The notes under the pieces: model-generated | What the model was told of the DNA's origin: nothing | What the model saw: the letters and a program-made list of their open reading frames with translations, nothing else | The model's database searches: none | Shown here: in pieces, positions 3,330 to 9,102 of the stretch | Numbering within the stretch: the first letter of the stretch is position 1 | Layout: each line of letters starts with the position of its first letter | Made by a program: the position numbers and the translations under genes | Source of the DNA: Schizochytrium sp. TIO01 | Taxonomy: Eukaryota > Protista > Bigyra: Labyrinthulomycetes | Assembly: GCA_004764695.1 (NCBI GenBank) | Contig: SMSO01000007.1 | Span: 434,001-498,000, forward strand | DNA length: 64,000 bases | Reading direction: 5' to 3'

Positions 3330-6300
3330 CTATGCCTCATTACAACGGCGAATGAACTCTGCCAGAAAGGCCTCTTGCTCGTACCACAGGTGTCGCACAG
3401 GTAATGATTGTTTTTCTCTGAAAAGATTAGCACAAAAGGATGGTACTGAGTTGATATACTCACTAAATGGGGCAAAACTACTGCGTTGAGACTCAGACTC
3501 GTGAACGAGAAGGATAGGCTTTCTCGCATTCAATGCAGCTTGAAACTCTACGCACACAGCATTGCTACTGAACACGCCTTTTGTTAGCACAAGAACATAT
3601 ATATGTGCCTGCTGTACGCCAATTATCATTGCCTGTTGGTTTAGATTCATACGGTACTCCTGAGAGAGCCACACTTTTAGCCCTCGATGAGATAACTTCT
3701 CCGACAATAACTCAGCGAGATTGCCACCGGTAGACTCTATATGGCTTAAAAACACGTGGTGTACTTCGCCTATATTTAATTGTGGAATCTCGTAAGATGG
3801 CAAATTCGTGCCATCCTCATCTGTATCAAGGCGGCCAATATTTTCGTCAAAAAATGGTGCAAATTCCTCAACGCTGAGAAAGTCGCCATCCACACTAGCA
3901 ACTTTTGGGTTGTATGACTGACGCGCTTCTTCAAGGTCTTCGTACAAAACTTTCTCTTTAGATTTAGGGCCGAAGAGAACTAAATCCCACTTGAGGTGCT
4001 TAAAAAGAACTTCATTTTGCTCTCGAAACATTGAAACCAAAAACTTGATCACAGTCGCTGGCGTCAACGCGTTTTTGTGAATCTCAATACGGAGACAGTC
4101 ACCTTCTATAGAAATAATAAAAGAATTATAACCAAAAGCAAATTTTGCTGTGCAACTGTCTAAGACAGGCGTCACAAGTGGTGCATCACCCAAAACATCA
4201 GGTCGTACTGCATGCGCAGCACACTGCCTGACAAGACGCTGGAAAACCCCATTGGGCAAGTAGAACGCAGAGAAATCAAGTTCACAAGTCAATCCAGGCT
4301 TGAATTTGCTCGTGTCCACATGGCGCTGCGAGTCTGACAACAGACCTGTAACAAGGTACTCAGTCTCTTTTGCCTTGCGATTATATGACCAGTCGCTCAA
4401 AAGCATATTTTCTCGCATAAAACGAATGAGATAATCAACTTCTTCATATTCCCACAGAAACGCAAGGAGACTATGTGTTGCGATTGCATCGCGACGCAGC
4501 CGGTCGAAATCCTCCTCTACACCTGCAATCCTCAAGTCATTAGTTCGATAAATTTGCTGTATATGAATATCATCGGCGATAACTAGAGCTAGCTTGTCAA
4601 GAAGCCATTGCGGCTCCAAAATGACCACGCGTTGCAGATCCTCAGTGCTACGAAGGTGAACCACAACGCCGAGCATATGAAAGTAGTTTAACATGTCATC
4701 CACATCTTCACCGCAGCGACCGTACTGAGCTGCAACTTTGACCACCTCCTCATAGAGTAGATAGGGTTTCTTTTGTTGGAGTAGAACCTCCTGCACTTTG
4801 AGCCAAGCAAGAGGCACTTTCTGTTTAGTATAATCTTGTTTCATAGCTGCATCAACAATCACTTGGCGTAGCTGTACTGCGCGATCCAAATCAGGACTAC
4901 TATTGTCTAATTCGAAAAATGGTCGACCGTTTGAATTACTAACTATGCATCCTCTGTAATTTCCAAAGCATACGTCCTCCCGTAGAATTCGTGCAATCCT
5001 GTTAAGGCTCTGTGTGTCTTTAATTTGATCAAAGTAGGTTCCGACCATTATAATTGGTGAATCGGGTGCATGAAGATAAATACTGTTTAACCAAAAGCGC
5101 AAGTAGGAAACAGCTTCAGGCTTCGACTTCTGATTTAAGAGCTCTTGCATATCAAAAACAACCAGGTAAATTCCCATGTTTGTGAGAAATATGTGATGAA
5201 GGGCATAGAAAACGTCCTGACCTCCATAGTCCCAAATCGTGAAGCTTAGATCAAAGTCCAGGGATGCATTATCGCCAGATGCTTTTTGAAGCAACTTCTT
5301 ATCATCTTTGGTTAACTGAAAGCGCCTAGCAATTTCATCTTCGTTTGCGAGGACCGCTTGTGGCATGGATTTGCTGGAGATTTTCCCTGACAGAGTACTA
5401 CTGGCATGCTTTGCTGATCGTCGGATCGCGCTAAAAACCTTTCGTCGAATGCTTTTATGTTTAACTTCAGCCTTCGGGCGAATACGACGAAGTGCAGCTT
5501 TCCTAACTTGCATGTCAAACTCCTCAGCATCGTCAGATAACTCTACAAAGTCCTTTGCACGAGTCCGATGTAAGTCCACAACCTCTGTCGAAACATGATC
5601 TGGTTTATAGGTCCTCCCAAGTAATGACCGCACAGTAGAAGTCTTTCCTGCACCCCCCTGGCCCACAACCATTAGTTTAACTCGACCCCAAGCGTGTTCA
5701 TCATTCTCACGAATTGCAGCCTGAACGGCCTCCTGCCATGCCTCATCCGGACTAATTGCTGAATTTCTTTGTAAATATGATGCAATTTCGCTTTCTGAGG
5801 TCTCGTTGCCAATGCCGTTGCTCGAAAGACTGTTGGTTTGATGAAATGAAGACAGGCAGCACATTCGCACATACATTCATTCATGATCGTCAGTCATTCA
5901 GATTGGCGCTTTCAGTATTTCATCTATTTTGTGCCATTTGGCCCTTTCTTCACTTTGTTCCAAGCTTCGAAGCGAGTGACCAAGCAAACTTCGCGTACAA
6001 CCAAGTCCAACCATAAGTTTTAAGGCAGCTAACTTACTCAAGTGATGTCAGGGACTGGTTTACTTTCATCGCCGCAGCTATTGCCTTAGCGCCCTCGTCA
6101 CCAATTCCGTTCAATCGAAGACTGTCAAATGATTGAATAAGGGCAAACCGCAAATCCATGCATGTATGATGGTCAGTCATCTAGGTTTGCTTTCGATATT
6201 TCGTGGCATTCGTCTCTTCATTTTGTAGCAAGAAACGAAACAAGCGAGTAAGCAAGTATCGTGTACAAACAAGTTTATCCATGAGCTGCTAAGACATCTA

Positions 6301-9102: not shown

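Follow-up and report, generated by a model that had tools for sequence, protein, structure and literature searches.

A predicted LRR-Roc-COR-TIR gene with one leucine-rich repeat per exon, and its paralog family, in Schizochytrium sp. TIO01

Does a free-living protist carry an immune-type receptor whose recognition domain is built so that it can vary? This question is raised by a gene predicted on the minus strand, between positions 9102 and 3330, of a 64,000-nt window of the labyrinthulomycete Schizochytrium sp. TIO01 (GenBank assembly GCA_004764695.1, contig SMSO01000007.1, positions 434,001 to 498,000). The window is the whole stretch of DNA that was analysed, and positions without a locus or contig name refer to it. 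A preliminary description of this DNA had proposed an array of eleven leucine-rich repeat (LRR) exons, each of exactly 84 nt and of the same phase, that feeds a Roc-COR-TIR module, and had called the gene a candidate diversifying immune receptor. The gene is real as a predicted model, and its architecture is as described there. It is probably an intact germline gene for a cytosolic, 1,162-residue LRR-Roc-COR-TIR sensor of immune type.

Direct reading of positions 5400-9500 revealed a unit of about 270 bp that recurs twelve times on the minus strand. A minus-strand scan for AG, exactly 84 nt and GT[AG] returned eleven exons in the array region, compared with about 0.7 one-strand chance matches expected in 3.3 kb (the rest of the window has 0.43 matches per kb, both strands summed), and all eleven are homologous LRR units. 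Each exon is open solely in the frame of 1 nt, 27 codons and 2 nt; hence, the flanking introns are of phase 2. Exon 1 (9038..9102, 65 nt) begins with the ATG at 9102 and comprises 21 codons and 2 nt before the donor GTAGGT. Homologs of this Met-initiated, 21-residue exon were found by tblastn 5' of the array in about 18 paralog loci, which supports the start of the gene model. The LRR exons follow at 8785..8868 (exon 2, a cap-like first repeat), 8514..8597 (exon 3), 8247..8330 (exon 4), 7968..8051 (exon 5), 7678..7761 (exon 6, acceptor CTAG) and 7465..7548 (exon 7), identified by the pattern scan and a hidden Markov model (HMM); at 7160..7243 (exon 8) and 6891..6974 (exon 9), identified by the pattern scan and self-alignment; and at 6599..6682 (exon 10), 6307..6390 (exon 11) and 6038..6121 (exon 12), identified by the pattern scan. 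The last exon (3330..5829, 2,500 nt including the stop at 3330-3332), recognized as an open reading frame (ORF) and by Pfam, encodes a partial twelfth LRR and a linker, followed by Roc, COR-A/B and TIR.

When the 13 predicted exons were joined by script, they gave 3,489 nt, or 1,162 codons, whose sole stop is the terminal one. The introns are 129-221 nt long, all GT..AG and mostly not multiples of 3, and each contains stops in all three frames; one exon plus one intron makes a repeat unit of 213-305 bp. The eleven stop-free, phase-2 exons of exactly 84 nt with canonical splice sites are thus confirmed by both the scan and the joined model. A six-frame HMM scan of the whole window found no LRR exons other than the 12 coding repeats, whether cryptic, inverted or within introns; the opposite strand was empty. 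With differences of 25-30% and indels between its units, the array escapes Tandem Repeats Finder. No Rfam match lies in the gene region, hence no intronic snoRNAs or miRNAs of known families. By eye, the protein has neither a signal peptide nor a membrane segment.

Many isoforms of Dscam are made from one gene by exon choice. Likewise, skipping or mutually exclusive splicing of the 84-nt exons could yield many isoforms in addition to the protein encoded by the full germline array, because all eleven exons are of equal length and flanked by phase-2 introns, and any subset stays in frame. We regard such combinatorial use as possible yet rather unlikely. The 24 splice sites are all canonical, with donors and acceptors of similar strength, and a skipped exon would create a chimeric beta-strand from the split codon and the adjacent hypervariable codons, although this strand is predicted to be structurally tolerable. 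In its favor, alternative splicing of LRR exons has been reported in the ROCO genes of the brown alga Ectocarpus (PMC3341825; PMC11378527).

The intact germline gene that we favor would encode a short N-terminal peptide, about twelve ribonuclease inhibitor (RI)-type LRRs of 28 residues, a Roc GTPase followed by COR-A/B and, at the C-terminus, a TIR domain like that of SARM1. Each LRR exon matches Pfam LRR_6, and the PDB matches are ribonuclease-inhibitor-like proteins, NOD2 and NLRP3. Single exons score E values of 7e-5 to 7e-4 against LRR_6, slightly below the gathering score, as expected for a lone repeat. With a length in the 28-29-residue range, LRR_6 similarity and a ribonuclease inhibitor match, the repeats are of RI type, so the 28-aa RI/NLR-type repeats proposed at the outset are borne out exon by exon. 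The 84-nt exon aligns to positions 10-24 of the LRR_6 profile; therefore, the intron divides the repeat core between LxxL and xLxxN.

In the last exon, Pfam identified Roc (5.3e-18), COR-A (6.6e-14) and TIR_2 (1e-7; 32.7 bits, cut-off 28). The Roc GTPase occupies residues ~44-295 of this exon (4944..5699, minus strand), with the G1 motif GQGGAGKT and the G3 motif DYGGQ, and was assigned from Pfam, the AlphaFold model and PDB matches to LRRK2 and CtRoco; in the model, it holds an insert of about 110 residues of low confidence. COR-A and COR-B span residues ~318-660 (3849..4877, minus strand; Pfam COR-A and Foldseek). The AlphaFold model of the last exon has a pLDDT (predicted local distance difference test) of 80.7, and Foldseek aligned about 660 of its columns to the LRR-Roc-COR part of C. 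tepidum Roco and LRRK1/2 (6hlu, 3dpu; E 4e-17). A Roc domain with P-loop and switch motifs and a COR domain directly C-terminal to it place the protein among the ROCO proteins. The joining of the LRR-exon array to a Roc-COR-TIR module is therefore upheld by Pfam, the joined model and the structure matches. The TIR domain (residues ~688-832; 3333..3767, minus strand) matches Pfam TIR_2 and, when modelled on its own, reaches a pLDDT of 92. The top PDB matches of the modelled domain are the TIR domains of SARM1 and C. elegans TIR-1 (E 2.4e-8, template modelling score up to 0.84 on the target). Glu761 of the last exon comes to lie opposite SARM1 E642 when the HMMER alignment is extended by eye. 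The position is near-invariant across 14 homologs, and Glu761 is a candidate catalytic glutamate. A Pfam search of the last exon for NB-ARC or NACHT found neither; apart from Roc, COR and TIR, there was a weak sub-threshold AAA_22 match. The protein may act like an NLR, yet it is no NLR.

The genome searched for relatives comprises 64.07 Mb in 37 contigs (numbered with C below). A search with the last exon gave 35 matches, which correspond to about 27 Roc-COR loci. The TIR domain was present in all loci checked, in two subtypes, and the family size is at least 27 Roc-COR loci. A DNA search with a single exon gave 484 first-look candidates across the genome; the paralogous arrays that the preliminary description had asked for are thus abundant. 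An exon survey with an HMM built from the repeats of the window gene covered 20 fetched paralog upstream regions; six other upstream regions and orphan arrays lay outside it. Of 229 LRR repeat matches, 224 are exons of exactly 84 nt with AG and GT in place. No in-frame stop was seen in the surveyed LRR exons, although independent drawing of bases would predict about 40 at the three codons that vary most. The arrays that link the conserved first exon to the Roc exon contain 2, 3, 5, 6, 7, 7, 10, 11 (the window gene), 12, 13, 13, 15, 15, 16, 17, 18, at least 20, and 22 LRR exons, and the unit periods among the family arrays are about 270, 360, 385 and 480 bp.

Several members of the family merit separate mention. 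LRR arrays with no Roc-COR match behind them occur at C24:3981944-3984804, C34:2932337, C23:28059 and elsewhere; they may be orphans or belong to genes that end in another C-terminal module. At C4:242828-268383 (loci L003, L004, L006, L014 and L015), three type-A paralogs have last exons with stops or in fragments, and one array has at least 20 LRR exons; in this cluster, the paralogs closest to the window gene are thus seen to undergo birth-and-death turnover. The 13-exon arrays of L026 (C30:400-10399) and L027 (C13:3998750-4008749) differ by 0.36% in their introns and at 0 of 117 hypervariable nucleotides; either the duplication between chromosomes is very recent, or the assembly contains one locus twice. 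Three successive tRNA genes stand directly upstream of a 3-exon paralog array (L021:7105-7950). A protein from the Logan assemblies (P0001) is 98.5% identical to paralog L005 (1543-3987), so public runs contain DNA of a strain closely related to this one. Those Logan-assembly data yielded no counterpart of the window gene; this could reflect presence/absence variation or merely a fragmented assembly. An exact exon-core pattern scan of metagenome contigs gave no match, and a protein-guided scan gave just two partial loci, both without upstream sequence.

Where the repeats vary is highly uneven. Repeat positions 3, 4 and 6 have an entropy of 3.1-3.6 bits and 15-19 residue types. The codon split at the junction varies as well, position 9 has two forms, and the entropy of most remaining positions stays under 1.5 bits. 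Positions 3, 4 and 6 and the junction correspond to x5, x7, x8 and x10 of LxxLxLxxNxL. In LRR proteins in general, such positions form the end of the beta-strand and the following loop, and here they are predicted to lie on the concave face. About four variable codons directly flank each intron, and since they lie on both sides of it, one structural repeat is specified by two adjacent exons. In young arrays, introns differ by 1.5-3% and four-fold synonymous sites by 5-9%, compared with 40-62% of the nucleotides in the three variable codons; the proportion of nonsynonymous differences (pN) at hypervariable codons is 5-10 times the proportion of synonymous differences (pS) in the framework.

These features suggest how the gene might work. 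Because every internal LRR has a separate 84-nt exon with phase-2 introns on both sides, unequal recombination at any point of the exon-plus-intron unit of about 270 bp would add, remove or convert repeats in frame. The LRR surface would bind a variable ligand, either non-self or modified-self; binding would change the nucleotide or dimer state of Roc-COR; and the TIR domains, once brought together, would cleave NAD+ and thereby trigger a signal or cell death. The whole would be an NLR-like sensor-switch-effector in which Roc-COR takes the place of the STAND (signal transduction ATPase with numerous domains) ATPase. The same features would also suit conspecific recognition and regulated cell death, comparable to the fungal HET/NLR genes, or general stress-signalling ROCO proteins rather than defense against pathogens. 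A hypervariable binding face, a death-type TIR effector and subtelomeric expansion (see below) fit allorecognition loci, and brown-algal ROCO genes respond to abiotic stress too (PMC3341825; PMC11378527). We give this account only a minor share of the probability, and none of the present evidence favors one of the two readings over the other; the persistent mirusviruses known from the host, most likely an Aurantiochytrium, make virus sensing plausible.

Several points weigh against the immune-sensor reading. The gene model is predicted from sequence alone, and we infer NADase activity, GTP binding, the ligand and the immune role alike. In the window gene itself, pN at the hypervariable codons is 0.54 against a framework pS of 0.46; these codons are saturated, and the gene's own sequence thus gives no evidence of recent diversifying selection. 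The claim of a diversifying receptor therefore stands in part: the signal is strong in younger paralogs, but positive selection is not seen in the window gene. Furthermore, a collection of 5.8 billion proteins holds no near-identical entry for the last exon, whether all 832 aa or only the first 260 served as the query; this does not speak for expression, nor does it speak strongly against it. A neighboring CoA-transferase ORF is represented in the same collection by an MMETSP0958 transcript protein with 99.6% identity. The window gene may be silent or weakly expressed in standard culture, since no near-identical protein is found while its neighbor is present from MMETSP transcripts. An A. limacinum proteomics paper and its supplements contain no LRR, TIR or ROCO terms.

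Could the window copy then be a silent relic that is decaying into a pseudogene, with only the subtelomeric paralogs functional? Besides the missing transcript-derived protein, no other member of the family has repeats and introns as diverged as these (21% intron mismatch and 39-46% synonymous difference within the gene), and two close paralogs on contig C4 already contain stops. However, all 13 exons are open and all splice sites canonical. The ratio of nonsynonymous to synonymous substitution (dN/dS) is 0.25 for framework codons among the eleven LRR exons and 0.19 for the last exon against its nearest paralog (76% identity), alike in Roc, COR and TIR. The LRR scaffold and the Roc-COR-TIR part are under purifying selection, which argues for a translated, constrained gene and makes a relic improbable. 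The intact gene in the window, about 437 kb from the contig start and with no 5S gene nearby, is an interior, older and diverged member of the family, less homogenized than the subtelomeric paralogs linked to 5S ribosomal DNA (rDNA).

That a targeted mutator or somatic diversification made the hypervariable codons, rather than selection on standing germline variation, is very improbable: in young arrays, repeats with identical 160-nt flanks still differ at 48% of their hypervariable nucleotides, and the difference stays flat at about 0.56 whatever the flank divergence, but no hypervariable change separates L026 from L027, pairs with the same residue use different codons nearly as often at framework positions (9%) as at hypervariable ones (13%), and the genes are complete in the germline, so cassette assembly is unnecessary. 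On the first two of these counter-observations, fast clock-like hypermutation was rejected. The best reading is that old variation at the binding positions has been retained by selection, with introns and scaffold homogenized by conversion and unequal exchange.

A trace of such exchange is found in the window gene. Self-alignment revealed a conversion or duplication tract on the minus strand. Copy A (6677..7205) begins within the 3' part of exon 8 and ends just inside exon 10; copy B (5824..6352) likewise begins within the 3' part of exon 11 and ends just inside the last exon. The copies are 96.6% identical over 529 columns, and 97.7% over the last 483; the flanks are 68% and 38% identical. 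A perfect stretch of 232 nt includes exon 9 in copy A and exon 12 in copy B, which are 100% identical. Between the end of exon 8 and exon 11, a 14-nt patch of mostly synonymous differences suggests that the tract is a mosaic left by at least two conversions. Because the tract ends inside exons, it points to homologous conversion within the repeated unit, not to intron-mediated shuffling of whole exons. Of the recombinable array in the preliminary description, the recombination itself is thus supported, by this tract of about 0.5 kb (units 7-9 against units 10-12) and by paralog exon numbers that range from 2 to 22 or more; classical exon shuffling is not, as the tract ends are intra-exonic.

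The position of the paralogs is as uneven as their sequence. Of the 27 Roc-COR loci, 12 are no more than 125 kb from a contig end, against 14% expected (binomial P = 1.7e-4). In at least eight paralogs, a 5S rRNA gene stands 420-470 nt upstream of exon 1 in divergent orientation; such genes were located at L019:2386-2504, L020:2374-2492, L022:6320-6438, L030:6253-6371, L032:6368-6486 and L028:5394-5507. This suggests an intergenic region shared between Pol III and Pol II and repeated at many chromosome ends. Beyond the paralog arrays, 18S genes are found, for example on contigs C7 and C24. The apparently internal clusters on C13 (4.0-4.09, 5.67 and 7.15-7.3 Mb) and C24 (3.98 Mb) also bear 5S and 18S genes, and may be chromosome ends that were joined in scaffolding.

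This setting resembles that of a published repeat. The LORE-TEARS of A. limacinum, published as non-coding, are tandem units of 366-529 bp, in 1.8-22.6 copies, which are subtelomeric and lie between 5S/18S rDNA and the telomere (bioRxiv 10.1101/2023.06.15.545109). The paralog arrays L019:2386-9700, L020:2374-9700, L030:6253-9700 and L032:6368-9700, on contigs C7, C8, C13 and C24, have 385-bp units in 2-17 copies; other paralogs have units of about 360, 410 and 480 bp, with 2-22 copies overall. Matched by unit size, copy number and position, the Group 0 or 385-bp class of LORE-TEARS probably consists of coding LRR-Roc-COR-TIR exon-intron arrays. The window gene itself falls outside LORE-TEARS, on account of its 213-305-bp units, the lack of a nearby 5S gene and its distance from the contig start. 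A bolder proposal, which we regard as speculative and improbable as a whole, is that the family, with several hundred 84-nt exons, many of them subtelomeric, forms an anticipatory repertoire of the contingency type in a mirusvirus-carrying host, in which mitotic ectopic recombination, exon skipping or both would produce clonally different sets, and the LORE-TEARS would be its coding arrays.

Two neighbors of the gene in the window were noted. At 10377-13298 (minus strand), a 973-aa ORF encodes a PA14/fibro-slime-like and an L-type lectin domain, with a C-terminal membrane segment by eye; it is possibly a surface carbohydrate-recognition receptor adjoining the LRR gene. The region 15120-21554 (minus strand) is a single ORF of 2,144 aa.

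Innate immune receptors are almost unknown in free-living protists, and the present family shows a design that resembles that of NLRs, with a gene structure through which the recognition domain can readily be expanded and converted. The one-repeat-per-exon arrangement has seemingly evolved twice in stramenopiles, and genome architecture for variable receptors would then have converged. In addition, the enigmatic chromosome-end repeats published for Aurantiochytrium gain a coding explanation from the family. Since Aurantiochytrium is culturable, genetically tractable and mirusvirus-carrying, TIR enzymology, knock-outs and virus challenge are feasible.

How does the gene compare with known systems? 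Like plant TIR-NLRs and animal NLRs, it joins an LRR sensor, a nucleotide switch and an effector, with RI-type LRRs as in NOD2 and NLRP3, hypervariable solvent-exposed LRR residues and a homogenized scaffold. It differs from them in having no NB-ARC or NACHT, in its reversed domain order (LRR N-terminal, TIR C-terminal) and in its exon-by-repeat array. With C. tepidum Roco and LRRK1/LRRK2, it shares the LRR-Roc-COR order, the fold over about 660 columns, and the P-loop and DxxG motifs; it has no kinase, a TIR output, the Roc insert of about 110 residues and RI-type LRRs. SARM1 and TIR-1 are the best structural matches of its TIR domain, with the glutamate aligned by eye to E642. Identity to SARM1 is about 21%, however, and the TIR domain is fused here to Roc-COR and in SARM1 to ARM-SAM; the activity here is a predicted one.

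The thraustochytrid lineage supposed in the preliminary description is supported by the MMETSP0958 match of the neighboring ORF and by named matches that are best in Hondaea. The header of that MMETSP0958 record (P0244) gives taxon number 87120, which belongs to the fungus Rhizopogon burlinghamii and is probably 87102, Aurantiochytrium limacinum, with two digits exchanged. Among named proteins, the best matches come from Hondaea fermentalgiana, Mucochytrium quahogii and Aplanochytrium; they are 38-49% identical over Roc-COR-TIR and have automatic names only. Some of them have N-terminal RI-type LRRs (P0043, P0046), and others WD40 or SAM domains. In transcript-derived labyrinthulomycete relatives (P0040, P0017), RI-type LRRs are joined to Roc-COR, or Roc-COR is joined to TIR. 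ROCO-TIR combinations in databases come from Hondaea, Mucochytrium and some animals, and LRR, Roc and COR domains also appear in the architecture figure of a 2026 preprint on assays of eukaryotic TIR domains. We found no paper that describes ROCO or TIR receptors in labyrinthulomycetes.

The closest known design is the LRR-ROCO family of the brown algae Ectocarpus and Saccharina, in which each 24-aa LRR occupies a 72-nt exon, as the preliminary description had correctly stated, with exon shuffling, positive selection on the concave face and no TIR domain (Zambounis et al., 2012, PMC3341825; Teng et al., 2024, PMC11378527). Both systems combine N-terminal LRRs, one repeat per symmetric exon of equal length, and in-frame gain and loss of repeats with a large family, a variable exon number, variation on the predicted binding face and a Roc-COR switch; both hosts are stramenopiles, and both families have been proposed as pathogen receptors. 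The differences concern the repeat itself. The brown-algal exon encodes a plant-type repeat (GxxPxxLxxxxxLxxLxLxxNxLx), whereas the 84-nt exon encodes the 28-aa RI type; the brown-algal intron follows the complete LxxLxLxxNxL core, whereas the present one cuts it at LxxL|xLxxN; and the split codon is divided 1+2 in brown algae, by our own reading of the paper, and 2+1 here. In addition, Ectocarpus has inverted and inactivated intronic LRR exons, which the window gene lacks. No brown-algal protein was among the 108 protein-search matches of the last exon. Because intron position, repeat class and division of the split codon all differ, the one-repeat-per-exon design is probably of independent origin. 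As an architecture, the LRR-Roc-COR-TIR protein predicted here is a variant of the known brown-algal LRR-ROCO type to which a TIR output has been added.

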